Below, piece after piece: positions 113-54,100 of a stretch of DNA of 64,000 nucleotides. The stretch comes from Magallana gigas. Taxonomy: Eukaryota. Made by a program: the position numbers and the translations under genes. Location of the stretch: NCBI RefSeq assembly GCF_963853765.1, contig NC_088858.1:41354001-41418000 (forward strand), read 5' to 3'. Position 1 is the first letter of the stretch, and each line of letters starts with the position of its first letter. The notes under the pieces are model-generated. The model worked only from the letters and a program-made list of their open reading frames with translations. It was not told the DNA's origin and searched no databases.

Positions 113-19323
<19,211 letters not shown>

Positions 19324-23548: not shown

Positions 23549-25557
23549 TCATTTCATTTTGTTTCCGTTAGGATTTTTCCAGAAAGAATTCTTTGAATTT
23601 TCCACTTTTCCGGACGCATTGAATGGTCTGACCATCATCGGTTTCGTAGTTGTCGGCTGCTTTTTGCCGCGGTAATTTTGATCGCTCGGTGGTAGAATCG
23701 CTAGCACGTTTTGTTGCTCATGCTGTGTTAGCACGGTCATTTCAAGTCTCTCGAGATTCTCCTGCAGAATAGCCAGTGACGCCTGTTGGGAGTTTAACTG
23801 TTTCTGCTGCTGCGTCAAAAGTTGGTGCGCGCTATCTTTCTCGGCCCCGAGTTTCATGATCTCCTCGTGCTGTTTCACCAATAAATCCTCCAGTTTGATC
23901 TGTCCGTCTGCCAACCTCTGGTGGTCGGCCGCTAGCTGCTCGATCATGTTCAGTTTCTTGTTGATCATGGTCTCCTGGTTTGTGATCTCTTTGTCTTGCT
24001 CCTCGATCGTTCTCTTCAACTCTTTGATTTGCTGACCTTTTTCAGTCAAATCAATCTGCAAGTTGGAATTGTCTTTGACTGATTTTCGTAATTGTTCGTT
24101 TTCGATTTGCAACTTTGTTACCCTTTCGTGGTATTTATTGTTGGTTTCTTTTAACTTCCCCATCACGTTTTGCAAGTCTCTGTACTTCCTTTGCATGTCC
24201 ACAAGTTCATCATCCTTGAACTGAAGCTGTTGCAGCAGCTGTGCTTTTTCTTCCCTTTCACGTATTAGCGCGTCTTTAGCACTATCAAGGGTTTTCATCA
24301 CTTCTGATAGCTGCTTTTCGAGTTCAGATTGTCTTTGGATGATTGTGTTGAATTCCCTTTGAGAGGCTTTTGTGTCTTTTGAGAGTGTTGATAGAGACAT
24401 TTTGACGCCGACAATTGCTAGTTTTTCCTCACGTTCACTATAGGACGTACTTATAGGTGTACTAGTATCCCATTGCCTAGAACTATTCTGTAAAATGAAA
24501 ATATAAATCGTGTACATGTACATGTATAAACTCTTGTTTTGAGTTTTGGAAAAGTTTGTTCATATATTATATACATGTAGCAACAATTAAAAGTATTGGT
24601 ACCTTTGCAGTCTTTTCGAAGATATCTTCAGAAGTTAATGTANNNNNNNNNNNNNNNNNNNNNNNNNNNNNNNNNNNNNNNNNNNNNNNNNNNNNNNNNN
24701 NNNNNNNNNNNNNNNNNNNNNNNNNNNNNNNNNNNNNNNNNNNNNNNNNNNNNNNNNNNNNNNNNNNNNNNNNNNNNNNNNNGAAGGAATTTGTACTCAT
24801 CTATTCCTTACATTTACTAATCGAATCCTCGTCTTCCGTTTCTGTTTTTAAGTTTTCTACCACGTGATTGTACCCACAATCCTTTAGAACCTCACAGAAG
24901 TGGGTGAATCCGGTCGGGCACGTTTTAAGCACGCGCTGTATGCACGTGTCAATCCTATCTTTGTACGTCCCTTGTTGCAGGACGTCGTCTTTGTCGGAGG
25001 GGGACAGAACACATCGGTCCTCCAACGTGTCGCAGACGATTTGGAGATTGATTTCTTCGTTGAGAGTTAAAAGATACCTAGCGAAAGATTTTGAATCATT
25101 TACACAACCATGATTAGAGACTCGTGCAGTATGTACTGGTACAAGCAACACATTACTTCGCCCATAAGACAAAACTCAACACAGAATTGATATATTAACT
25201 TCAGTTGGCCTTAAATTTACCAATGAAGATTAAGGTTTTAAACAGACTGGGTGGTCAACAAAATACCAATAAGCTCCTATAGAAAGTTCAATAAGATATT
25301 TTATAATCCATTAAAAATAAGAAAACATAATTTGATACGAAAGGAATAGATGTTGATGTTTAATGTTCAGCTTTATCCCAACTCCTTTTAGTTGCAGCTC
25401 TCCTTATAAAGGAAGTAAGAGAAGTCATAGAGGCCATAACCACCCAGCCTTTGGAGATCAATACAAAATACCTTAGAAAACTCCATTTACCATCAAGGAG
25501 ATAGGTCTGTTCGACATCAGGATCAAACGTCACTTTTCTCTTTTCTTTTGTTTCCAT
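23549..25557 (-). CDS. CARD/death-fold + coiled-coil protein A (about 437 aa)
   Basis: Exons 25557-25472 (ATG, phase 2), 25077-24812 (CARD-like YLLTLNEEINLQIVCDTLEDRCVLSPSDKDDVLQQGTYKDRIDTCIQRVLKTCPTGFTHFCEVLKDCGYNHVVENL, phase 1), micro-exon 24625-24603 (23 nt, phase 1 to 0), and 24487-23549 (312-aa Q/E/K/L-rich heptad coiled coil). An assembly gap lies in intron 2, so an extra small exon cannot be excluded. Confidence 0.72.
24643..24782. other. Assembly gap (140 N) in intron 2 of CARD-CC gene A
   Basis: Run of N characters. Confidence 0.99.
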
Positions 25558-26429
25558 TCTGTTTAGGAAATGATATAGCCATTAAGAAAACATGAGGAGG
25601 TTAAAATGTCCTTTTTACTTACTTGAAAACAGATTTTATTTCAATTTTTTTTTTGCAGCAGTTTCACAATGACATAACGACTTTTAAAATCTTAAAATGA
25701 CTGAAAAGCGTCTAAGCTTTACCAAGAAAAGGAAATTAAGGAATTATGATAGGCTATTTGCATTTCTGTGCGTGTACCGTTTAAAAAGCCTGTGCAGATA
25801 AAAGTGATGTTTGATACACATCATATCACGATAAAAGAAGTTTTTGCCAAAAAAAAAATCCAAAAATACTTGAGACTTGTCTTTACCTTTCATTTAGTGT
25901 AGCTCCGTACCCACACTTCTGGTTTTATGAGGGAGATTGAACATGGAGAGGACAGGAGCAGACTTTGGCAAGCCTCCATGCTGTCTCCGGCCGTGATTAA
26001 GCATTTATCGTACTGACGCTTCAATCACAGATAACTGTATTGTTGACAGAATTCAATTGTTCCCGGGCTGATCGGTTTGCCATTTATTATTCGGGGCTTT
26101 GTTTTCTCGTGCGAACCTTTTTGCGATGGGAACCGTGATTTGGTTTAATCGGAAATTAGACTTAAAAACACAGGGCTTTAACAAAAGTCATTTTTCGGAA
26201 TCGTAAAAATACAAATTTTATTGTTTAATAATGTCGATCCAGTTATTATTATATAGTTGCATATTTTTTTTTTATTTCAAGATCATGAACACTTTCAATA
26301 TGTAGCAAAATTTTAATACTAGTAAATATATTTTAATATTTAAATATCTCACAAAGATTTTGACATGATATGGTTCATTTGTCGAACCTCTATTCAATAG
26401 CATTGACGTAATAGGATCAATATTTCCTT

Positions 26430-26738
26430 ACCCAATGAATATTACATTTCATCATTTGAAAAGATATTGATCGATGAACCCATCGGTACCTTCATATCTT
26501 GCATGAATCAGCAAAGAAAACATTTTATTGTTTATATTTACATCTTTTTAAAACAAATTTTTGAATTGAACATAAAAGTAGGTAAAAGTAAATAAATTAT
26601 TGTTTATTAATGTACTTAAAAGAAGTAGCTCATGCATGCCGTCTTATATGGGAATTTGAGTATGGCATCGATCATCATGGTTATTTCGTGCAGTCTAGGA
26701 ATAAAGGAGAAAATACTCGACAGTAGTAAAATATAAAG
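26430..26738. mobile_element. Degenerate copy of the dispersed element at 59225-59703
   Basis: Shared blocks gcatgaatca.caaagaaa.catt.tattgtttatatttacatcttt, atgggaatttgagt and ttttcgtgcagtct. Confidence 0.65.
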
Positions 26739-27140
26739 TTAGATGCTTTTTTTTAAATGAGCTTATATAGCAATTCTAATAATTACAAAAAAGTCATACC
26801 TTACCGCGCATCTTACCTTCATTATAGCATAAAACGTCGAAGAAAGCCTTTTATATATATTTTCATACTTTCTTAAACCTTTTTCTTCCTCAAAAATGTT
26901 TTATTTTTATATTCTTTTACATATATAATATAATTCAATGTAAAATTTTGCTTGATTTCAGTTTGACAGCAATATACTTAAAATTAGATAAACTTAATGT
27001 ATTTCAAATCAGGTGATTTGATTGTAAATCGCTGCTTGCTGAATTTATGTTTCCTGCGTATTGTGAAAATTACAGGGAGTTTCTTCCACATTTATAGGAA
27101 ATGTATATATCACTAGTCCAGTAAGTTGTCACCTGTCATG

Positions 27141-27465
27141 TTAAATAAGGAATAAGGAATCATTCTTTGAGTATTATGAGGTTATAATTTTGGTCGGGGC
27201 GTGATCAAATCCAATAAAGCCCGAAGGGCTTTATGATAGATTTGATCACGCCCTGGCCGAAATTATCACCTCATAATATTCAAAGAATGATTCCTAATTA
27301 CTTATATTTATATAATTTTAGGCCATCGTACGATTAAATATTTAAATATAAATAAACAAACCCCGCTGGCGCCTCAATTTGGCGTCATTTGTATTATGAG
27401 TTATATAGTACAACATCGATACGTAGTGTTATCACAGACAAAGACACTGGATAATGTAAATATAA
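27141..27465. mobile_element. Fold-back non-autonomous element (141-bp palindrome plus tail)
   Basis: 27155-27295: aggaatcattctttgagtattatgagg...aaagcccgaagggcttt...cctcataatattcaaagaatgattcct; the tail ends gtaaatataat. Confidence 0.7.
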
Positions 27466-27709
27466 TCGGATAAAATCTCGATGTGTAATGTTCGCTGAAT
27501 TGTATATTTTTGTTTTGTTTTTCTCAATACATGTAGTTGCTTTTTCATTTGTTTGGAGGGGAGAAGACTGTTGTTTGTGACTTTAATTGTTCTGTAGATA
27601 TTATTCTGCTGTATTTAAATCTGAAGAATATCATTATGGTTTCGAGGAGATTAACAGATATGGATACTTCTTCAATAATTCTCTCAAGCTTTCTACGCCC
27701 GAATGTACC

Positions 27710-27880
27710 TGCATTCTAGTGTCACCATGCCCCCCCCCCCCCCCCCCGATGCATGCATTCTAGTGTCACCATGCCCCCCCCCCCCCGATGCATGCATTCT
27801 AGTGTCACCATGCCCCCCCCCCCCCCCCCCCCCCCCGATGCATGCATTCTAGTGTCACCATGCCCCCCTGATGCATGCAT
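27710..27880. repeat. Minisatellite: constant 26-nt spacer plus variable poly-C run (4 units)
   Basis: gatgcatgcattctagtgtcaccatg separated by C runs of about 18, 13, 24 and 6. Confidence 0.92.
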
Positions 27881-28420
27881 GTATACACAGTGCTCCTGTA
27901 CTGGTACTCTATATATCGTCCCACATGTGTTCTGTGTGTACAAAGGACGATGGACCTTTGTGTTACCAATTATATGATTGATTAAATGGTTTTTAACATC
28001 AGAGGTTTCACAAAGCATTGGTCCAGATTATTTGAATACAAAACGCTGCTATTTAATTAAGATTTTTATTTAAAATATACGATGTAACATGATAAACGAA
28101 TAATTAACAAAGGGCCCTCTGTACAGTTTGTCATTGGAATGACCTTCAAACTTCCGTGCAATGGTTTCAAACGGTTCCAGAATGATACATTGTTGTAGTT
28201 GAACGTGCCAATGGGACGTGAAGGAATTTTAAATCAGTGAGAAACAATGGTGTGTAACGATGCCAATGGCTTAAAAAATATCCAATTTGCTGCCTCAAGT
28301 TTAAAGCATATAATTAGTATCTATAAAAAGAGGCAGTTATTGTGTACACATTTCAAGATTCAAAGCAGCAATAGTTTCGATCTTTTCACCGTTGATAGGT
28401 TACGTTTTTCGCGCTTTTGC

Positions 28421-29981
28421 TCAAAATGACCACCCCTTTTCTTGCGCTTTTCCACCTCTGGGAGGTGGCGGCGTGAACTTCACGTTGGCGTGATGAGAAC
28501 GATTCACGACCCCGCTCATCCATGGCATCGAACGCGGCGGAGACACGACTCGTGTGCTTCGACGCCGGGCGTTACCTCCATAGATTGAGTTTCGGTGGTT
28601 TGAGACTGGTGAAAGCTGTTCCAACAGCCGAAGGCGCGCCTCTAGACGCTCTAATCGTTCCTCGTCTTTTCTCTGCATATCTTCTAGATGGTCAATCTTT
28701 TGTCTTTGTTTTTCTTTTTCATCTCGAAGCTCAATGATTTGAATTTGCTGGCGAGTTCTTTCACTAACCCCTTCGTCATGTAGGACCTCTAGTTTCAGAA
28801 TCTGTACCTTCTGTCGCTCGTTTTCGTCCTCGATGTCTCTTATCTTCTTGAGCTGTTCGTTCAACTCTTCGTCTTTTTCGATGAGCTGCTGCCTCTGTTG
28901 CTCTAACTTCTGCTTCAGTTCATCTAACTCTTCTGCTTTCTTGTCCAGGTCAGCCTTACTCTCAGTTTCGCAGACACCGCTGTCGCGAAGTTTCTTGTTC
29001 TCCAACTGAAGCTGAATAATCTGTTTTTGAAACGTGTTCAGTTTTTCAATGAGAGCTCGGTTCATTTTTCTTAATCTCTCATTGTCTGCCTTCACTCGCT
29101 GCAGTTCATCCCAAGACGGATTGCTGTGTTGTGTGGTCTGAACAATTTTTTGGAAGAGTTCGGCAATTGTTGGTGCAATGCGCACGAGTTCAGTCTCTAG
29201 AGTTTTCATGTCCACGCTGGCATTTTCTGCAGCAACATTTGCCATGGCAGCTGCAGCTGCGTGCACCGACTCCGCAGCCACAACAGGATCAGGAGCAGAC
29301 GACACGTTTGTATTAGTGCGGGAAACAGATGATGTACTCCTGCTGTGGGCAGGTGGAGGATTTTTCTCTGGTTCCTCATTTATAATCTAAATACATGTAT
29401 TCATGATTACAAAAGTTTAAAGAAAGTCCAAGAATACCATGCTATACTTATAAAACGTCTAGATTGACCAAAAGGAATGGGAAAATAAATAACTTTACAA
29501 ATAAACAGAGAAATTCAAACTGCATACCTGGTCTTCTGATCCAACTGCGGCCGCAGGGCCTGTATCAAAACGTATGAATAGAGATGTAGATTCATATCAT
29601 ATTAATGATTTCAGATTAAAACCAAAACAAGTATTCTAATTCATTCTTACTTGTATAGGAGTCTTCTCGACCCGCAGAAACAGCTTTTGGCTTTTCAACA
29701 ATATCCATTTTCTCGTTGATTTCTTCAAATTTCCCCGAGGAATCATTGCTGAGAATCTTACAAAATATCTCATACCCTTCGTCACCAGTCTCCAGAAGAA
29801 TGTTTAGAAACTTCTCCGCTCTCATTAGTTTAGTGTTGGGCTTCACATTATTAATATCGTTCTTGTTTTCCTCCGTAAACACTCCGGCCGCTATCATTTT
29901 ATCCGTTATTTCCGGAACCGGAAGTTCCTGTTTCAGGAACATCCAGTTCCTCCACAACTTCCGCTCGTTTTCAGGCTTCAT
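28421..29981 (-). CDS. CARD + coiled-coil protein B (about 442 aa)
   Basis: Exons 29981-29651 (CARD: LWRNWMFLKQEL...AEKFLNILLETGDEGYEIFCKIL, phase 1), micro-exon 29559-29528 (32 nt, phase 1 to 0), and 29386-28421 (Ala/Ser-rich linker, long coiled coil, basic tail). All splice sites are canonical. Confidence 0.85.
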
Positions 29982-31079
29982 TTTCACTCTTTAAATCATC
30001 ATAATCGTTTTCCTTTTCTTCTGCTTCATATCGCAGATGTGAGTTCTGCGACGTCCAAAATTCAAAATGGCTTCCAGATGTTCAAGTTAATTTGGTATTC
30101 TTTTGTTCCTAGGGATTTAAATGATATCTCCTGTTGAATTCATCCGATCAGTAGCGTTCTTGTTGATGAGTCTCCGTTGTTAAAATGATAGTGATGATGT
30201 CACAAAGGTCATCTGTGGGGTCAAATTGAACAAATACCAACGACACTTGATATTATATTTATCTCACCGCCTGGCAATGTTAGAGGTTTATATAGTTTTA
30301 ATAATTAATATTTTTACAGATAAATCTCTATTTCGGGTTTTGGCAATTTAGGCTGCATTTTTATCTTGCACTATTAGAGGCCGAGTGTTTCTCGCGCGTC
30401 CCTATGTCAAGGATTCGGGCAGTACTAATTTGCAGACAAAATAATACAGAGACAAAAATTCGCAAACAATATCATATACTAATAAACAGAAGAACAATGG
30501 TAACATACATGTATGCTTAAAATGATATGGGGGTGGGATGAATGGGATAGAAGACCGGGCATAGTTTCATTGTTTTTAATTACTTTATCTTTTCATCTAA
30601 TATTATCTATTTTACACTAGTTTAATATCATTCCTTGTTGTTGGATCATCAAGATCCAGGTGTAATCAGACCGTACCATTTTTAAGGCATCACTCTTAAG
30701 GTTGCAAAAAGGTACATCGTTTCTTTAGAAAAAGCTGCACAAAGGTAGTTTATTCGAAGCCACTTCATAGACACTTGTTTCTGCATTAAGTATAGTCAAT
30801 ATTGTAATATTAAATCTACATATGATAATGTAATATAATGGGGTCAACTTTATCGCAGAATCAAGTGCCTGTGGAGAATTTTCTTTTTTTGGGGGGAGGG
30901 GGGGGATTTGCAAAATCTTGATGTATAAGAGAAGACATGACGCATTGTGGTGTATTTTTAGGACCACACAACCATCGACAACTCACATTAAACACTAACA
31001 AGCATAAGGGGGAGAGGTCACACCCCACTCTAAAAGATTAAAAAATAAAACTTATTAAATTCAAATAGTAAAGTAAACA

Positions 31080-31122
31080 AAAAATGTCACACCCGGCCCC
31101 TTATCATGAAAAATTATCAACA

Positions 31123-31154
<32 letters not shown>

Positions 31155-31173
31155 AATTCTTGATCCGCGCATG
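31080..31173. mobile_element. Partial copy (right end) of the CATGCGCGGATC MITE family
   Basis: Ends in GATCCGCGCATG after a poly-C tract, like the right end of 21717-21877. Confidence 0.55.
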
Positions 31174-32707
31174 GAGACAATTCAGGAATTTAAACGGTAC
31201 CTTCTACGATTAATTTGCGAATGGAATGGGATATATCATGTGATTTTTGATTCCGAATTGTTTGAAGTCAAGATACATGTTTAAATTCCACATTATAATG
31301 GTTATAAATTGCAATTGCCATGCTAGCAATATTCGTGATGCACATTAACACATTAGCAATGTTTACTATTGGTTTTTTATTTTCATTTTACTTTTAATTT
31401 TCGAAATGTTAATGGGAAAACTACGGTTTAAGAAAAATAAACGCAAAGGATGTTGACTGGTACGAAGATAAGAGTTGCTTTAGCGCTGTATTTATTTACT
31501 GATTATAAATATATAAACATGCAAGTGTTAGGCGATTTGTATATGCAATCAACGAATTAAGACTCGTATTCATGAATCAATGCATAAAAAATTTAATTTA
31601 ATATATTTATTCATATCTTCATTTCATTATTCATACCCAGATGTTATCCAGAATGTCGTATAAACTCGATTGGGTTAATATGTGATACTATTAGCTTATT
31701 GGTTTTATCCAGTTTCCATTGGATTTATGTATGTACATGTATATCCCGGAAGGTATGCTTATGAATATATATTTTTATACTTGAATGAAACGCCTATTTT
31801 TTCATCTCTTAGATGTTGCTAATTATTTACAGCAACATACTGTAAAACAAGGTTTTTTACACGTGCAATAAAATCTTTAATGTTTCTGAGATTCTCGAGC
31901 TCGTTGTCGCAATTACAACAATACCTATCTCTGTTTATCAAGCAACCATAGCAGCTGCTACATGTATTTGTTGTGTTAATGTCAATGGTAGCGCTATTTA
32001 TCTATTGTATATAGGGAAAACTTGGTTTTTAACATTATGTAAATACATGTATCTATTGAAATGATGCCAAGGTGTAACCATGCTTATCATCGTTAAAATT
32101 ATACGGTTTAAACTTTTCAATCTTTGATTTATGGTGATCTCGTGTTGACATCTACCACACCACTGGTTCGAAATAAGTTAATTTTTGTTAATGTTTTACA
32201 ATTTCAACGATGGACTAGGATTTTAAGTTCATATTTTTAGTTAATACAAATGTTAGATGTTAAATGTAAAACGGATATTTTTTCACTAGGGAGGTAGGTC
32301 AAAGAATGTTTCGTAGAATACCGGTATTTTGATTGAGAAGAAAGTTTTCAGTTATTTTCAACATTTAATTGTATCTACAGGATAAAAACATAGATACCAA
32401 AGTATATATAATGAACAAAAACTATTTTGTATCGAGATTTAAAACAACAACAATACACATTCATGTTCATTTTGAATATTTCATTTTATAAGATAAAAAA
32501 TTCGTCGTACATAAAATCGAACATCAACATCATAAGAATTCTAAACAGAAACGATTTACAACACTCTCAATGAAAAGGTTCTCTGGACAAAATACAATTT
32601 CAACTTACAGATAAAAAAATTAACATTAAAATTGCCATTTTTGAATGAAATGGAAAGGCTTGTATGTCTGCATATTTTTTTTTCAGGTTTGAGTGACGTC
32701 ATGTTTA

Positions 32708-34634
32708 TCACGTGATTTCGCTGTTGTACATCTGACCCAGAAGTCGCTTGGTCGTCCTGAATTTGGGGTCCCGGGATTTGATGCTCTTGGTTTTGTTGAC
32801 CGGGGCTTCCTCTATCTGCTTCAGTCTTTCCTCCAGTCGTCGCAGACGTTCGTCTCCCTGTCTCTGCTTTAGCTCCAGCTGACGAATCTGTTCCTGCTGT
32901 TTATAACGGTCCTCTTTCAATATGGCGATTTCTTCCTGTTGCCGCTCGTTTTCTTGCTGGCCCTCCTCGTGAAGAATCTCGAGTTTCGTGATCTGCCGTT
33001 TCTGGCGGATAATGTCCTTTTCAATTTCCTTGATTTTCATCAGCTGTATGTTAAGCTCCATTTCTTTTTCTTCCAGTGCATTTTTCTGTTCTTCCAGTCT
33101 CCTTTCCATGTCTTGTAATTCCCGAGCTTTGCGCCCAAGTTCTTCCTTTGCCTCTTTAGCACCTTCGCCATTTTCCCTAAGATTCTTATTCTCCAACTGC
33201 AACTGGATGATTTTTTGCTGGAAGTTGTTCAGCTTCTCAATCAGTGCCCTGTTAGTTTTTCGCAGCCTCTCGTTTTCTTCCTTCACCTTGCGGATTTCTT
33301 CTTCGCTGACCGGAATATTTGAGGATGTCGTCTTCGATATCTTTTGGAAGAGCTCAGCAATGGTTGGTGCGATGCGAACAAGTTCCTGCTCCAATATGTT
33401 CATGTCCACTGACAAGTCTTTCTCGTTTAGTCGTTTGTCATCGCTAGAAGCGGCTGATGGCGGTTGCTCGTCTGCCACGTAAGATGGTTGAGGTGGCTGC
33501 GCTTGGTTTGGGAATCTAGTTACTGAATTGACCTCTCCCGTGCTGGGCTGACGGACCATTCCTCCTCGAGCGCCGCTATTACTTGTTGGACGTCGTGAGC
33601 TTGCGCTGTTGGGGTTACTTCCGGAATTCTGAGACCGCCATGCTTGTCTTGCAGATCGCCGATTTTTCTCTCCGGTTTCACCATCTCTGCTTATATCAGT
33701 ACTTCCGCTCTACAACATTCAATTTTAAACATGATCTATTTTTCAACATTTCAGAAAGTTTTGTAATATTAAAAAGCATTGTTTTATCCTTAGCAAATGC
33801 CTTGTAATAATTGTACCAAGGTGCTTAAATGCTTACTGAAGCTGTGGAAGGTCTTTGTGAGCCTCGGGTGTCTGGCCTTAAATCACTAGAGGCCGCGGAA
33901 GCTGTTATAAAAATGATGCACATCAAATAAAAATCAAAATGTGGAAATCAATTACTGTTCTAGAATTCCCGCCTAGTTTGTATGATTAATCATATCTCCA
34001 TTGTTTTTTGTTATTGACCTGTACAGATTTATAAAAGTCACGTGATTTGCGATGAGACGTGGTTCCACCCAATAGTTTAAGATAATTTATAGTGGTGATT
34101 TAAATCCTTATTTTAAATTTAATGCTGACGTCAATATGCATATCAAATTGCGTGAAATCCAGTGCGAGTTTTTCTCGAAAAAATGAAACTTGCACGCGTT
34201 TGCAATTCAATTTTATTAGTTTCTTACGCAAAATTAGAAATAAATATACACTTGTATACTGTATGATGCCATTTTAAAGCTACAGGAAATACATAATGAC
34301 AAGAAACCGCCTTACCGTCTTCCACCAGTGGGTGAACCACCATCACGTTACCACTGGGGAGGTTCAGTTTCTCCATCAGGGACGTGTATCGGTTGTCTGT
34401 TCTCATGGCGTGGAGCACGGTGGTAAACATCTCGTACCCCTTCTCGCCGGCCTGGATGAGGACGTTCAGGAACTTTTCGGCCTTCATTTGGCGCGTGCTG
34501 GGCTGCACCATCATGATATCTCTTTTATTCTGGGCAGTAAAAATCCCAGCCTCCATCATCGCATCAATAAAATCCTCCACGTAGATTTCATTCTTCAGGT
34601 ATTGCCAGTTCTTCCACAACATTCGCTCATCCAT
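32708..34634 (-). CDS. CARD + coiled-coil protein C (about 461 aa), close paralog of B
   Basis: Exons 34634-34316 (CARD: LWKNWQYLKNEI...AEKFLNVLIQAGEKGYEMFTTVL, phase 1), micro-exon 33901-33837 (65 nt, phase 1 to 0), and 33709-32708 (Ser/Arg/Pro linker plus coiled coil). Shares ELVRIAPTIAELFQKI and ENERLRK.NRALIEKLN.FQ..IIQLQLENK.LR with gene B. Confidence 0.85.
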
Positions 34635-36379: not shown

Positions 36380-37771
36380 TCACATATTGGATCCAGTAAT
36401 TAAAGAAGGATTTGGGATTTCGGACATGGTAGGAACTGTCAGACTGATGCTACGGTTAGAGGAATGGATCCGCGGTCCCATCGGGATGCGGTTGTTTTCC
36501 CCGGTTTTCAGTTTCTCTAGTTTTTCTAGCCATACCTTGTATAGGTCGTATGTCTCTAGGGACTGGATTCGTGGAACGTGCCACTTTGTTCTAGTAATGG
36601 ACATTCCTTCTTTTTCTAATCCAGTGGAACAAGGGTTAAGATTTTTCGAAAGATGGCCCGCAGAACGAGATCTCGAGTTATCGACTTTTGCCCCCGGGGG
36701 CAGCTTCCACTGGATTCCAATGGTTTCAATCTTACTGCGTCCTTTACGGTAAGAGATTTGTTTGTACAACGAAGAATCACTTTTGAAACTTTTCTGACTA
36801 CATGGAGTAGAATTTATTTCACTTCTTCCATCTTGTACTGGTGAATATATTTCGGGCGTTTTCCGCACATATGCAGCACTTTTCGGGGCAGTTTTCTCGG
36901 GTTTCTCTCGATCCACTCCGCTCCACGTAACTCGTCTCGCAGATTTTCGTTTAGAAGTTTCTTTCGGCGATGGAACTGGTGAAGAGGACTGGTTGCTATA
37001 CGTGTCGAGGTCATTCATACCAAGGGTCAAGTCTTCATAATCAGGGGTCATCGGTGTTTGGCCTTTCTTCAAGATGCTTGTTTCAGGTTTGGCGATGGAA
37101 TGCTTGTCAGGATACTTATTCTGAGGTAGGAAAATTCCTTTTTGTTTATAAACTTTGACATAAGTGGAGTCATCTTTGTCGATGGGAACGCGGGGATAAG
37201 TTGATGGACGGTCCAATCTTTTAACGAACGCGCTCTCACCATTGGTGTGATCCATAACCACGCGCTTAGCAACTGGTGTAGTGGCGCGGTTAGAAATCTG
37301 AGGCAGTGTTGAGGAGGAATTTTTGCGATTATCAAAGAAGACTTTCATCTTCTCCTGATTCCGTCTGACAGTATCACTGTTTCTCCTCATCTGCTCATGG
37401 CGTTTGATTAGCTGATGGCCCTCGCTGCTGATACGGCTTTTCTCCATTTGCATTTCGGAATTGAATTTCTTATTCAGACTAGAAAGCCGAAGGTACTCCT
37501 TGAGATTCTCTCTCTTAAGTTTATTCACGACCTCTGTCCGATTACACAGTTCTCCTGGGATGCCCTGCCTTAATTTACTGGCAATGCTATTCCTGAGAAG
37601 GTTTTTATCCACTAGGTTATTTTGCACCAAATACACGTCTTCTCTCACTTTGAAAATCTTTGTTTTTCCACACTCACTTTTAATTGAACTTGTCCTTTCT
37701 TTTGAATAGCTCTCCGATGTTGAGTAGTTGGAACTATTTTCTTTCCTCTCTATGTACGGGGACTCTCTCAT
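36380..37771 (-). CDS. Uncharacterised 463-aa basic Ser/Lys/Arg-rich protein; single coding exon
   Basis: Uninterrupted 1392-nt ORF in very AT-rich DNA, where chance ORFs are under about 150 aa. Start context aagATG with an in-frame stop 5 codons upstream. A splice acceptor (tttcattttag) at about 37812-37822 suggests a separate 5' UTR exon. No domain recognised. Confidence 0.75.
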   Translation of the reverse strand: MRESPYIERKENSSNYSTSESYSKERTSSIKSECGKTKIFKVREDVYLVQNNLVDKNLLRNSIASKLRQGIPGELCNRTEVVNKLKRENLKEYLRLSSLNKKFNSEMQMEKSRISSEGHQLIKRHEQMRRNSDTVRRNQEKMKVFFDNRKNSSSTLPQISNRATTPVAKRVVMDHTNGESAFVKRLDRPSTYPRVPIDKDDSTYVKVYKQKGIFLPQNKYPDKHSIAKPETSILKKGQTPMTPDYEDLTLGMNDLDTYSNQSSSPVPSPKETSKRKSARRVTWSGVDREKPEKTAPKSAAYVRKTPEIYSPVQDGRSEINSTPCSQKSFKSDSSLYKQISYRKGRSKIETIGIQWKLPPGAKVDNSRSRSAGHLSKNLNPCSTGLEKEGMSITRTKWHVPRIQSLETYDLYKVWLEKLEKLKTGENNRIPMGPRIHSSNRSISLTVPTMSEIPNPSLITGSNM

Positions 37772-48100: not shown

Positions 48101-51100
48101 AATATTCCAACTGACAAAGAGAACTCTGCACAGAAAACGGCTTTATACACACACAAAAATACGTAAAAAAATTTAAAGCATGTAATTTATTTGGTGAACA
48201 CTCACCATAATTAATTTCTGACCCATTTCCATACACTTTAAGTAGTCGTCTTCGCAACTCCTCGTCCTTTTTCCTATGCCATTCTGAGTGCTTTTCTTTT
48301 CGAGCTTTTTCGTGCTCTTCGTGCATCCTGTGACGTTCATCCATTCTACAATTGTTCAAAGTACATTATGATATTAAGATTAAGGAGTGAAATCACTCTT
48401 GACATAAGATATAATATAGTAGACTATCATCCTTCTTTCCTTGATCATAAAAATACCAGCAGTAAAACCATTTATCTATCGTTTTATTTATAAGTTGCAG
48501 TATTTAAAATGCTGCATTTCTTACTCTTCTTCATCCTTTAGCTTCTTATGACTATGAGGCCTTGAATGATGAAGGAGATCCGATCTTTCTTTACGGTAAT
48601 ATTTATCTAAGCTGGCATTTGTTTCCTTAGCGTCCTGTAACGTTTGATCAGCCTTCTCCTTCACACTGTCATAGAGGTCCTCTGTCTTTCTAGTGAGAGT
48701 AGAGATCCTTCCATCCAAATCCGTCTTTTCTCGGCCATCCTGCTCCTGAATGAAGTAAGTGATAAGTTAAAATTGCATCAGAATCCCAAAGCTCATTCAT
48801 TCACTCACACAAATCCTGAGCATAAAAACACACCTCTTTGCGTCTAAAGCTTTGAGCGAGATACTCGGACCGACTCTCTACTCCACGTCGTGTGTCTGCA
48901 GTCTCTCGTCTGACTTTGTTCGTCTGATCCTAAAATGTTATTTATATATATTTTTTTTATAAAATGATTTTTAAAAAATGTGGGTTTTTTTATTCAATAA
49001 ATTGTAAAAACAAAAACTTTTTCTTATTGACTTACCCTGACAGACTTATCTTCGTCGTAATAATGCGAAACAAACCTTAGCTGATCTAAAAGACATTAAA
49101 TACGTATACATGTAACATTTATTAAACAAATCGTTGATTTTAAGCGATTAAGAGAAGAAATTGATACAATTTTTCCTCATTATAATACAACATATCGTAA
49201 AAACGTGCATGAGATTATGAACAAAAAATGACAGCAAGAATATTTCCTCTCAAGAATTCATGTTATGTTGGGAAACCGTGACCTAGAACACAGGGAAAAT
49301 CTTGGATAAAGTGCAACTACTTTTGAAGATGTTACCAGGTCAACTTTTTACCAACGTTGTTCATTTCTAACTTCTGGTTATTAGATAAGAAACGCAAATG
49401 TTAGTATATAGTGCCGAAATCTGTTACCTGGACCAGTCGAGTTTAAGTCTGAATCTACTGCGTAAAAGTTAACGAATTGTTAAACATTGTAGAATACACT
49501 GTCTACGTATACATTAAGCGAATACAGAAATAACACATAAGTTTCTAAATAAAACTAGTTAATAATGAAGTTGTTATATTCCAACACAACTATATAAGAT
49601 TACAGACATCATAGATGTTGATAATTCTCACCTCTAAGATAGCTATCCCAGTTGTCCATTGTGCTCATTTCCAAGTCGTTCTCGCTTCCTCCGGGCGTGC
49701 TATGTTTGTAGACATCCATCATTTTGCTAAACAAGACAATGTCATGCATTGGACCCGTATAGATTTGAGCGCGCTTCAACTGATGCATTTGGCGGACAAA
49801 ACGTCTCTGGTCCTGATACCGTCGCACGCTCTCTTGAATGGAAGCAACTCTTCTGGGAACATTTCGTCTGCGTCCGGAATTATCCAGTCTTTCCATATCT
49901 GCTAGACTAAGATTAGATTTATTTTTTGACCGAACTGGAGCAAGTTTATAATTCGGTTTTTGAGTTTTTCGTAGTTGCTGTAAAAGAAATTGTTCTTTTT
50001 GTTTGTTCCTCGCAAGTTGCGCTTTTTCTATTCTTCGTAGTCTATTTTGAAAATTGATTTCAGTAATCACATCGTCATCTTCTTCAGAAGTTTCGACATA
50101 GTCTTTATTTTGTTGAGTATGACCGTTTGTCAACACTGGGGTTTTTGATCGAGAATTGTCACGACTTTTTAGTCCTGGTTGAATCACTTCAGTGTCAGGG
50201 ATTTTGGAAGCTTTACGTCTGCTTCTAGATTCTCTATCTGGCGAATCGCTAGGCCGACTACTGTCAGGAACTGTTTCTTGTCTTGATTGCTTACGACTCT
50301 CCGCTAATCTCAGAGCTGCTTCTTGGTTTTCATGAGAGTTTTCTGGAAATTCAAATTCATCTTCGTCGTCTTGTTTTTCGGTATGAGCAGACCTAGACTT
50401 TGGAGTTTCAACAAAGGCGTCTTTCTTGTGTTCCTGATAATCAACAGGAGAAAGAGAAGGACTTAACACTAGATTATGCTTTGTCTGTGATTGTCGACCC
50501 TCTGTCTGTGAATGACGATCTTCGGTCTGGGAATGTCGATCTTCGGTCTGAGAATGTCGATCTTCAGACTGAGAATGATTTCCTGAATCTCTATTTGTTA
50601 CAAGTTCGACTTCCTGGAACTCAGTTCTTTCTCTTGAAATTGGTTTTCCACTATCTTTAGGTGAAACTTTTTGTTTGTTATTATCCTCTTTCTTTGGTCT
50701 GTGTTTAGTTTTTGGAGTACTAGTTGAAGGTCCCGGTTGATTTGTGGACTTGTTTTTCTTCTTTCCTTTTTCGCTCTCAGCAGCAATATTTGCTGCAACT
50801 AGATGCTTTTCCAAATCCTCTTCTTCTGCAAGGGATCCTGGTGTGTTTACTCCACTGTCTTCTCTTTCGTCAATTTCATCATCAGCATCAACTTTGTCTT
50901 CATTAAAGTTCTCTTCAAGAGTTTGCTTTTCTGATGTTTGCCTCTGATCTTCAACTTCTTGTTGAAGTTTTCCTGAAGTTTTCCTTGGGCTTTTCTCTTC
51001 TCGCTGTTTTTTCTCAGGAGTCTTTTTCCGAGGTGTGTCTTTTTGAGATTTTTCAGACGATTTTTTGTCTTTTTCCTCGAGTTTAGAGTTGGCTAACGAT

Positions 51101-54100
51101 TTTTCTTGACTTTTATCCTCACTTTTATTTTTTACCGATGTTTTCTTATCAGATTTCTCCTCACTCTCAGACTTACTTTGAGAATCTTTCTTCTGAGTTT
51201 TGTCGACTTCCTTAAGTTCAGGTGAAGTCTTTTCCTTATCTACTTTAGGCTGTTCACTAGACTTTTTTGATTTATCACTTTTACTAACAGTCGATTTCTC
51301 TTTCTGTAATTCACTTTTATCCTCTTTTGTGTTTTTTATTTTTTTATCAGTTCCAGGTTTCCCTGTGTTGTCTTCTTTGTTCTTACTCTCAGATTCCTTT
51401 TCCTCTTTATGAGCAGATTTGTCAACTTTTTCTTGATCTTTTGAATCCTGTTTTCCTTTCTTTTCTTTGTTTTTACTTTCAGATGACTTTTCTTCTTTAT
51501 AAGCAGATTTTTCAACTTTTTCTAGATCTTTTGTATCCTGTTTATCTTTCTTGTCTTTTGAAGACTTTTTGTCTTGTTCCTTTTTATCTTTTTCTTTTAC
51601 CTCCGGCTCCTCATCTTTATCTGGTTCCTTGACGTCTTTTTTAGGAGTTTTGGGAGTAGCAGGTGCACTTTTTTCCTTCTGAGATTCTTCAGGTTTTGTG
51701 TCTGTTTTTGTTGTATCCTTCTTGCCTTTTTGATCTTTAGATATTTCTTCTTTTTTACTACTATCTTTCTTTCCTTTACTAGGTGTTTTAGGTGCCTTGT
51801 CCTCTTTACCTTTTCCTCCTTTTTCTGTTTGTTTTTCTTTCTTTTTAGAAGTATCTTTACCTTCTTCTGTGGCTTCTGCAACAACAGCAGCCTGTTTGAT
51901 TTTTTCAGCCTCTGAATTTGCTTCCTCTGCTTCCTTTCTCAATTTCTCTGCCTCTTTTTTGGACTTTTCTGTTTCTCGTTTCGCTTTCTCTGCTTCAATG
52001 GGACTTTCTTTAATTGTATCGTCTTCTTCCTCTTCGTCCTCCTCCTGAATAGTATCAGGATCCTTTTTGCCTTTCTTATTTTTAGCCGCTAAAGCAGCTG
52101 ATGCTACTGCTTTTTCGTCTTTTTTGGTTTTTTCCTTATCCTTAGCTTTGTTACTTTCTACTTTTTCTTCTTTCTTTTCTTTTGCTGATTTCTTCTTCTT
52201 TTGATCTTGTTGTTCCTTTTCTAGTTTTGCCTTTTCAGCATTAGCCTTTGCTTTTTCCGCCTCTTGGTTTGCCTTTACAGCATCTTTCTTTGCCTCTTCG
52301 GCTTCTTTTCTGGCTTTTTCAGCTTCTTTATCTTTGACGTATCCCTTTTTCTTTCTAATAACTTTCTTGCCTTTCACTACAACCACCTCCTCATCACTTT
52401 CCAACTGGTCCTCCTTCTCTGGGTCTTTTTGTTCTTTCTCTTTCTTTTTCTTCTCCTGTTCCTTTTCGTTGCTGTCCTTTACTTCTTTGCTTCCCTTTCC
52501 TTCTTTGCTGTTCTTATCTTCTTTACTACTGTCTTTCTTTCCTTTCTTGTCTTCTTCCTTCTTCTCTTTTTCGTCAGCAACAACAACAGCAGCAGCAACT
52601 ACAGCTTCTTCTTTTTTATCAGTAGTCTCTTCAGGAGATGTTTTACTTTCTTGTTCTTTCTGGTTTTTTTCCTCTTCCTTCTGCTTCTTCTCTTCCTCTT
52701 TTTGTTTCTTTTCTTCCTCCTTTTTCTTTTTCTCTTCCTCTTTTTGCTTTTTCTCTTCTTCTTTTTTCTTCTTTTCTTCCTCTTTTTTGGTTTTTAATTC
52801 CTCTTCTTTCTTCTTCTTCTCTTCTTCCTTTTTTGCTTTTTCAGCTTCCTTTTTCTCTTTTTCTAGTTCCTTTTTAGACTTTGGTTTCTCTTCCTTGTCA
52901 GCCTCCTCCTGTTTCTCTGATTTTTTGTCCTGTTCTGCGTTTTCTTCTTCTTCTTTATGACTTTCCAAATTGCTCTTCCTAGATTTTGCCGATTTACTTT
53001 CCCTTTTATCTTTTTTATTCAATATATTGTCAATGTCACCACCAGTATTTCCTCCTTTGGATTTGATATACTCTGCTGTCTCTCTGTTGTCCTTCAAGAT
53101 TGCAGCATCGTACGGGGTGTACGATTTATCCTGAAGAAAGCGAAAACAAAGATTATCTTACGGCAATATCACAAGTATTCTAAATCCTAAATCAAGAACG
53201 TTATCCTCTCATACAGTGATTGAAAACAATTAAAATGACAACAGATTCGTTCGGATTCGACGGTAGTCAGGCACTCGCAATACAAATAAATCTCACAATT
53301 AGATGTCACTTCACGGATAGATAGACGACCGTTGGGACAAACTGAAGTAAAAATTAAACCGATTAGAATGGTAAAGATCACAGTCTGAGCAACACACACA
53401 AACTAATCCTAACTTAAATTACACCTGCTCTCTGATGCATTCCACCTCATGAGTTTATTGTTTTGTCGTGTTTGTTAACCTCCGATCACAAAGCACTAGT
53501 TCGTTTGTTGTCAATCTTCTACGTGTTTTAACACTGTGACTATGGTCTGTGTAACAACGAATGACTGAGTTATACGGATATTTACTGCCTGCTACCTATG
53601 AAAAAGGTTATCTGATAATTTTGACATACTACCGACGACTTCTTCTGAAACTTTAAATGCACGAAATCAGTGTATTGATCTAGCGAGTCCTAGACTACCG
53701 TATTAGAAGAAGACAATTATTTTCCTGCTTTCAACAAAAGTAACATGCATATAACATGGCATTATAGTCTCAGCTTTTCTTTAATTCAACATACACAAAA
53801 ATAAAAAAAAAAAGTTAATAGTGAAAGGTGATTTTTATAAGAAAGATAGTGATGTTTCAATTTCTAAACGTGAAACAAATTATTTACAACAGTTACAAGT
53901 GTGTGTGTTATAAACATTGCTGAAAATTCTTTAAACTTTGATCGTTCGATAGATACTTTAAATGCTACCTTTAAAACGTATTAAAAGTGGTTTAAGCAAA
54001 ATAATCAGTTATCAAAACATTCACAGAGCACAGAAATGAAATGTTATTTTTGTCAAACAAGCAGATTAGGATTACGTAATATTTAAATGAATTCACGTTA

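Follow-up and report, generated by a model that had tools for sequence, protein, structure and literature searches.

Proteins in which an N-terminal CARD is followed by a coiled coil are a known kind of adaptor. Here we describe three neighbouring genes of the oyster Magallana gigas, called A, B and C, whose predicted products share this order of parts. They lie between positions 23549 and 34634 of the stretch of DNA that was analysed (the window: 64,000 nucleotides of contig C6, G000:C6:41,354,001-41,418,000, about 34% G+C), all on the minus strand and in the order C, B, A. On balance, we think it probable that the locus holds three paralogues of an old bivalve CARD–linker–coiled-coil family, separate from the CARD-CC family, whose products work as CARD adaptors oligomerised through the coil. 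What the locus adds to the known kind is a separate bivalve family, a different type of CARD, a long linker, tail motifs of its own and a three-gene cluster.

Three described systems come close. The first is the CARD-CC family (CARD9, CARD10/11/14 and the invertebrate CARD-CC proteins), whose members, like A, B and C, begin with a CARD followed by a long coiled coil; CARD9, again like A, B and C, has no enzymatic domain and is expected to oligomerise via its coil. In CARD9, a 14-residue linker (residues 98-111) packs the CARD on the first coil helices, a form of autoinhibition (PMC6624267). An oyster CARD-CC protein has been listed, in which the CARD leads directly into the family linker YP..F..VT..D..EPP (Staal et al. 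2018, PMC5978004 supplement). The second system comprises the apoptotic initiator CARDs (Apaf-1, caspase-9, caspase-2, CED-3 and CRADD/RAIDD), which gave the best profile and structural matches to the CARD of the family described here. Unlike these initiators, A, B and C have no caspase, NB-ARC or death domain, and a coiled coil replaces the oligomerising or effector part. The third is the N-terminal region of DLG5, with the same head architecture (CARD and coiled coil) and a match over model residues 3-379. That match is weak (E 0.011, TM (template-modelling) score 0.20, 15% sequence identity) and DLG5, at about 1900 residues, continues into PDZ, SH3 and GuK domains, unlike A, B and C.

Gene models and splicing of the cluster

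Six long minus-strand open frames make up the three genes, two frames to a gene. Models built on canonical GT..AG sites give predicted proteins of 443 residues for A (one of them X), 442 for B and 461 for C. The original prediction, made from the DNA letters, had proposed three same-strand genes in this interval with exactly these lengths for B and C and about 437 residues for A. The features of the locus are given below in window coordinates; a joint is written as the two positions that RNA brings together, and UTR stands for untranslated region.

Gene A, minus strand: exons 25557-25472, 25077-24812, 24643-24603 and 24487-23549 (splice-consistent model)
25887..25985, minus strand: non-coding leader exon of A (5' UTR), 5' end undefined; RNA contig (run X11) spliced 25887 to 25558
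25472..25558, minus strand: first coding exon of A, ATG at 25557, with the N-terminus and the start of CARD helix 1 (GKWSFLR); joints 25073/25468 and 25558/25887, orthologue P0055
24812..25077, minus strand: CARD exon of A, donor AAAT/gtaagg, left in phase 1; Pfam CARD 26.3 bits, joints 25073/25468 (cut +4) and 24642/24812
24643..24782, no strand: assembly gap (N) inside intron 2 of A, save one coding letter at 24643; RNA skips 24643-24811
24603..24643, minus strand: micro-exon of A, 41 nt, phase 1 in and phase 0 out; joints 24642/24812 and 24487/24603, Saccostrea orthologue P0055
23549..24487, minus strand: last exon of A, with the linker end, the coiled coil (about 23723-24406), the basic tail and the stop at 23549-23551; open frame, joint 24487/24603 (3 runs)
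Gene B, minus strand: exons 29981-29651, 29559-29528 and 29386-28421 (splice-consistent model)
29651..29981, minus strand: first coding exon of B, ATG at 29981, entire CARD; Pfam CARD 42.0 bits, RNA, model
29528..29559, minus strand: micro-exon of B, 32 nt, phase 1 to phase 0; joints 29386/29528 and 29558/29650 (cut +1) in 4 runs, model
28421..29386, minus strand: last exon of B, with the linker, the conserved helix LETELVRIAPTIAELFQKI, the coiled coil (28607-29221) and a basic tail ending EKGWSF; model, joint 29386/29528 (4 runs), orthologues
About 28139 and about 30016, minus strand: extent of the 3' UTR and of the 5' UTR of B, respectively; transcript contigs spanning 28139-30016
Gene C, minus strand: exons 34634-34316, 33901-33837 and 33709-32708 (splice-consistent model)
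34316..34634, minus strand: first coding exon of C, ATG at 34634, entire CARD; Pfam CARD 29.8 bits, model
33837..33901, minus strand: micro-exon of C, 65 nt, phase 1 to phase 0; canonical splice sites, open frame, residues present in the NCBI models of Saccostrea echinata and Ostrea edulis
32708..33709, minus strand: last exon of C, with the linker and its DGETGEKNRRSARQAWRS motif, the conserved helix, the coiled coil (32798-33415) and a short basic tail; model, K1RK16_MAGGI (P0039), Saccostrea P0040, Ostrea P0038

RNA data were compared with the models over 24400-30399, the region of A and B, drawing on two raw stranded polyA runs, a set of RNA contigs and a further set that probably also consists of RNA. 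Four joints are seen in gene A: 24487/24603, 24642/24812, 25073/25468 (which fits equally well 4 places on) and, for an intron in the 5' UTR, 25558/25887. Gene B has two, 29386/29528 and 29558/29650, and in both genes the mates were all placed as a stranded library predicts for minus-strand RNA. A and B are transcribed, and they are spliced as CARD exon, micro-exon and coil exon. That is, RNA joins the CARD and the coil in both genes, a point on which the original prediction had staked its case. For gene C the same joining is predicted from splice sites, the open frame and the models of its orthologues.

The run of N in gene A falls between two of these exons. Joint 24642/24812 bypasses the entire run and leaves a single unplaced letter between its sides. 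Since both the RNA contigs and the reads skip it, the gap is intronic, apart from a single letter, the first of A's 41-nt micro-exon. One unbroken frame links the CARD exon of A (left in phase 1), the micro-exon (left in phase 0) and the coil exon, with the residue at the gap edge kept as X, and the Saccostrea orthologue of A (P0055) has the same exon content, including residues that match the micro-exon. The last exon of A is 100% identical to UniProt K1QL51_MAGGI. Gene C and UniProt K1RK16_MAGGI are the same but for one residue and the micro-exon, which that older model lacks.

A separate observation concerns the RNA of gene B (28139-30016). Each of the four RNA runs shows many differences from the window (about 2-3%, most reads being 95-99% alike) and has 9 extra letters in the 3' UTR, inserted after 28404. 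Assembly and RNA therefore represent different haplotypes or strains.

The proteins had been taken to be uncharacterised, and our literature search agrees: neither K1RK16 nor K1QL51 gave a match, and no paper dealing with bivalve CARD and coiled-coil proteins came up. One preprint mentions 'a CARD domain-containing protein' induced 6 h after ostreid herpesvirus 1 (OsHV-1), which bears no identifier and cannot be tied to A, B or C.

Domains, kinship and range of the family

All three N-termini pass the Pfam CARD cut-off (PF00619, 23.9 bits) with the scores listed above, and the three CARD exons also exceed it in a scan of the whole genome. Besides CARD, no family reaches the cut-off in the Pfam scan of A, B and C, and no membrane span was found in them (the top 19-residue hydropathy is 1.35). 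The CARDs are acidic, with isoelectric points (pI) of 4.7-5.8. In A, B and C, respectively, the linkers measure 45, 81 and 134 residues (Ser/Thr-rich in A; Ser-, Ala- and Pro-rich in B and C), the coils 228, 205 and 206 residues, and the basic tails have pI values of 10.3, 12.0 and 10.6. Composition and Pfam scan together bear out the plan first proposed for these proteins, namely a Ser/Ala/Pro-rich linker, a coil and a basic tail with no other domain or membrane span.

The fold was modelled for the B type, with AlphaFold2, using the Saccostrea B orthologue P0005 (76% identical to B) on a 19-sequence family alignment. Its N-terminus is predicted to be a six-helix CARD (helices at 5-13/15-21, 24-33, 39-46, 53-67 and 69-81) with the broken helix 1 typical of CARDs and a predicted local distance difference test (pLDDT) of about 90. 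The linker is disordered in the model (pLDDT below 50 over residues 99-154), as is the tail, and between them lie helices at 180-206, 212-255 and 258-378, mostly with pLDDT above 90. The predicted TM score of the whole model is 0.28, and therefore no fixed packing of CARD on coil is predicted. When the model was compared with the PDB by Foldseek, 50 of the 50 matches listed were CARD structures or designs on a CARD template. By this model the N-terminus of the B type is of the CARD subfamily of death folds, over DD, DED and PYD. The CARD foreseen at the N-terminus is thus borne out by the Pfam scan for all three proteins, and its six-helix fold by the model for the B type.

Sequence comparison makes B and C the closer pair and A a divergent yet homologous member, as had been claimed. 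B and C are 54% identical over 224 coil residues (E 5e-65), while A and B are 27% identical over 146 coil residues (E 5e-8). When 19 full-length proteins were aligned, 14 columns were invariant across the A, B and C types, including two Asn and several Leu of the coil; W15, E184, L187, L225, N237, L246 and Q247 are among these core positions. Outside the coil, an invariant helix, LE.ELVRIAPTIAELFQKI, stands directly before it in both B and C, a DGETGEK motif lies at the start of the last exon, and the tails of A (RPFN.SGK.ENSKN.FWK) and B (MPWMSGVVNRSHHANVKF) align together, the tail of C being shorter and distinct.

The exon plan is also held in common: a CARD exon that ends in phase 1, a micro-exon whose length is 2 mod 3, and one large exon for coil and tail. 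All four micro-exons checked follow the rule (41 nt in A, 32 in B, 65 in C and 107 in D1). D1 is one of two further members, of a type D, on contig C4 at 29.307 Mb (D1) and 40.987 Mb (D2):

C4:29,307,004-29,309,321, plus strand: D1, CARD–linker–coiled coil; CARD exon ends in phase 1, then a 107-nt micro-exon (phase 1 to phase 0)
C4:40,987,485-40,991,565, plus strand: D2, CARD–linker–coiled-coil gene of type D

The family profile finds the type D protein P0126 at 1.5e-15 over positions 7-403. Homologues of type D all come from bivalves. A type E protein (P0215) used as query gave no match in the oyster genome.

The three genes of the cluster have old and separate histories. Orthologues of B and C are found in Saccostrea, Ostrea, Pinctada, Mytilus, scallops, Tegillarca and Mercenaria; those of A occur also in Potamilus, Ruditapes, Mactra, Dreissena and Mya, and so extend to Unionida and Heterodonta. 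The order C-B-A on one strand recurs in Mizuhopecten yessoensis and Pinctada imbricata, and in Potamilus the 10 kb on either side of A hold no exon of B or C. The synteny proposed as a check across bivalves is thus demonstrated for oysters, pearl oysters and scallops. An exhaustive profile search of 1.84 billion representatives returned 680 proteins at E <= 0.001, 30 of them at E <= 1e-30. About two dozen of the matches span the coil, and about ten of those hold CARD and coil together, while all matches that do not reach the coil are CARD-only; the weaker full-length matches that carry names are all bivalve (Saccostrea, Ylistrum and Sinanodonta). On these sequences, A, B and C are three ancient orthologue groups, so far of bivalves only. 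The original prediction had pictured an expanded molluscan family, in place of which we find old bivalve orthologue groups with a conserved C-B-A order.

How strongly the family is conserved bears on one rival explanation, namely that these proteins are regulators or decoys. The CARD would then cap or sequester the CARD of a partner, as CARD-only proteins and ARC do, with the coil anchoring the protein elsewhere, a role already proposed for A by the original prediction. It is true that A, B and C have no effector domain and that three paralogues with diverged CARDs have stayed linked. However, decoys are usually short and fast-evolving, whereas here a coil of 200 residues and the tail motifs are conserved across distant bivalve orders, and for C the identity reaches 92% between oyster genera and 55% with the scallop protein. 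We consider a decoy role unlikely.

The names that databases attach to the homologues suggest a different rival. These names are golgin, TPR, restin, interaptin and myosin-2-like (the last borne by the Saccostrea type D orthologue), or else 'CARD domain-containing protein'. If the coiled-coil names were taken at face value, the family would be one of structural or trafficking proteins (of cytoskeleton, centrosome or Golgi) with the CARD as a mere binding head, comparable to the head of DLG5. The DLG5 match in the AFDB Swiss-Prot search, which spans CARD and coil, fits this account, as does the presence of A and B transcripts in ordinary polyA RNA, with no sign that a challenge is needed. Yet the coiled-coil names reflect composition, not homology. 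No structural family reaches the Pfam cut-off, and the coil is short beside those of golgins. Moreover, to our knowledge, the CARDs described so far function nearly always within assemblies of cell death or immunity. A structural role for the family is, in our judgement, unlikely.

CARD type and the proposed mechanism

The original prediction had placed the cluster near CARD9 and CARD11. At 95% identity, a 48-residue piece of the published oyster CARD-CC protein (CgCARD-CC) finds its place on contig C7 (51.127 Mb and 51.237 Mb), not in the C6 window. The gene is present there in two copies, about 110 kb apart on opposite strands:

C7:51,127,306-51,127,965, minus strand: oyster CARD-CC copy
C7:51,235,876-51,237,566, plus strand: oyster CARD-CC copy

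Because CgCARD-CC maps to C7, A, B and C are, by sequence and position, not orthologues of CARD9/CARMA (CARD-CC). The gene structures differ as well: oyster CARD-CC has many small exons and an intron splits its CARD, whereas B and C each encode the CARD in a single exon and A almost does. The published 204-residue CgCARD-CC sequence appears to end in intron read-through (LMLFLTSNLSHIQLKK).

The CARD itself points away from the CARD9/CARMA line. Against PDB sequences, the family CARD profile ranks CED-3 (4e-6), caspase-9 (2e-5) and Apaf-1 (1e-3) ahead of CARD11 (0.009) and BCL10/CARD9 (0.22); cIAP1, RAIDD and MDA5 also precede CARD11, and CARD8 follows it. In the Foldseek comparison with the PDB, the CARD of Apaf-1 comes first (TM 0.87, root-mean-square deviation 2.2) and CARMA1 stands at rank 25. 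The AFDB Swiss-Prot order is caspase-2 (E 5e-4), caspase-9, caspase-1, CED-3, DLG5, Apaf-1, BCL10 and CRADD, with CARD9/11 absent from the top 30. Within the oyster genome, a search with the CARD of B finds C first (6e-22) and then CARD-CARD-death-domain genes on C4 (1e-3), which form a cluster:

C4:46,143,343-46,162,091: CRADD/RAIDD-like genes, two tandem CARD exons then a death-domain exon (Pfam Death 27.3 bits); nearest CARDs to B outside the family

Single-sequence phmmer searches of each CARD against the PDB were uninformative, their best matches being designed proteins. Two supposed signs of CARD9/11 kinship were also considered. The stretches TGDEGYEIF and AGEKGYEMF, noted in the CARDs of B and C, are present, but the G..GY..F...L pattern that they form is not specific to CARD9/11: CED-3 and caspase-9 align over the same block. 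The other candidate was homology of the coil core of B and C to the conserved coil block of CARD9/10/11 (42-43 residues), where 12-14 identities at the same spacing do not rise above heptad-preserving shuffles (p mostly 0.03-0.9) and are not used here as evidence.

The CARD9-like explanation can now be weighed. It says that A, B and C are extra paralogues beside the oyster CARD-CC, whose coils oligomerise and thereby nucleate BCL10-MALT1 filaments that turn on NF-kB. The order of parts is the same, CARD then coiled coil, and the nearest clusters in a language-model atlas of proteins are those of vertebrate CARD9 (0.88; below 0.9, a lead only), a nearness that fits shared architecture rather than kinship. 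Oysters do possess BCL10, together with a MALT1-like paracaspase whose cleavage specificity is also MALT1-like (Staal et al. 2018, PMC5978004). On the other hand, the published oyster CARD-CC is a different gene, in two copies on C7 with an intron-split CARD; CARD11 and CARD9/BCL10 fall far behind CED-3, caspase-9 and Apaf-1 in the profile ranking; and neither the structure search nor the coil core brings A, B and C closer to CARD9. The packed 14-residue linker of CARD9 also has no counterpart: A, B and C have 45-134 disordered residues instead, a long linker that the original prediction had rightly set apart from that of vertebrate CARD9. The coil, helical and in two to three segments in A, B and C, is about 200 residues long there and about 300 in CARD-CC, and, unlike CARD-CC, A, B and C have basic tails with conserved motifs of their own. 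Overall, we regard a CARD9-like role as unlikely, and in the profile and structure searches the CARD stands nearer to CED-3, caspases and Apaf-1, the apoptotic-initiator type, than to CARD9/CARD11.

We therefore return to the preferred reading, that of a separate bivalve family of coil-oligomerised CARD adaptors, and to how such adaptors may work. The coil would form parallel dimers or assemblies of higher order, perhaps between paralogues too; core positions, including the two Asn, are invariant across A, B and C. An oligomer would hold at least two CARDs together, and the clustered CARDs could then recruit or nucleate a CARD-bearing partner through homotypic CARD-CARD contact, with the linker and the tail serving as regulatory or docking parts. 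Judged by the CARDs that the domain most resembles, an initiator-type (CARD) caspase or a CRADD-like adaptor would be a likelier partner than BCL10, at low confidence, and the likely output would be cell-death or inflammatory signalling.

Pairing between paralogues was addressed by complex prediction. The B coil with the C coil scored 0.53, which is weak support in a range (0.60 or below) where scores mislead more often than not, except for guesses that were already likely; the best of three controls scored 0.00. The prediction runs agree in at least 84% of contacts, with a partner pLDDT of at least 79. Among microbial proteins, 51 of 78 solved complexes reach the mark for this score, as do 2 of 108 mismatched pairs; among eukaryotic proteins, 39 of 65 solved pairs reach it, as do 2 of 126 unrelated pairs.

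Several points count against the adaptor family as we picture it. The B–C complex test is weak, and it is blind both to homo- versus hetero-pairing and to true coils versus look-alikes. The protein-language-model search sets the proteins nearest to vertebrate CARD9, as described above. Resemblance between CARDs is a poor guide to the CARD partner, and the adaptor role of the family members is a prediction from sequence and models. In addition, the restriction to bivalves rests on the named matches, next to many matches from read assemblies that carry no taxon.

A bolder version of the adaptor mechanism starts from the oyster homologue of Apaf-1, which is reported to be without a CARD, no CARD-bearing Apaf-1 being known in molluscs (Li et al. 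2017, PMC5550854). This leaves room for another CARD platform. A, B and C might be that missing platform of bivalve cell death, with the coil oligomer, and the Apaf-1/caspase-9-like CARDs on it, acting as an 'apoptosome substitute' that gathers CARD-caspases of the caspase-2/9 kind. We give this version a low probability. If it were true, the three linked paralogues would provide differing inputs or partners.

Neighbouring features and significance

The rest of the window holds several features that stand apart from the three genes. Between A and B, at 27146-27464, lies a 319-bp element whose halves are reverse complementary (86-89% alike). It has at least 3250 candidate copies in the genome, and 39 other full-length copies that were scored are 96-98% identical. 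Both strands of the element show very high RNA depth, and reads end at 27141-27147 and at 27464; a comparison with Rfam gave no match. It looks like a young, abundant miniature inverted-repeat transposable element. At 27722-28018, there is a G-rich/C-rich low-complexity stretch with poly-Gly and poly-Pro frames on opposite strands, over which no RNA depth was seen.

Further out, near-identical open frames of about 115 residues at 4667-5011 and 10523-10882 (both minus strand), some 5.9 kb apart, are probably a repeated element or a local duplication. Upstream of C, two more minus-strand frames were found, one of 1162 residues rich in Lys, Glu and Ser (49609-53097) and one of 463 residues rich in Ser (36380-37771); neither has a Pfam match.

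Against Vibrio and OsHV-1, bivalves have only innate defence and regulated cell death to depend on, and their death-fold repertoires are very large and poorly understood. In the 564-Mb genome studied here, the Pfam CARD scan finds at least 80 CARD-matching stretches. The misleading database names of the family (golgin, TPR, restin, interaptin and myosin-2-like) are corrected for all of its members. The family also bears on whether scaffolds of CARD and coiled coil arose more than once. Finally, it provides a concrete candidate for how CARD-caspases may be activated in molluscs whose Apaf-1 has no CARD.

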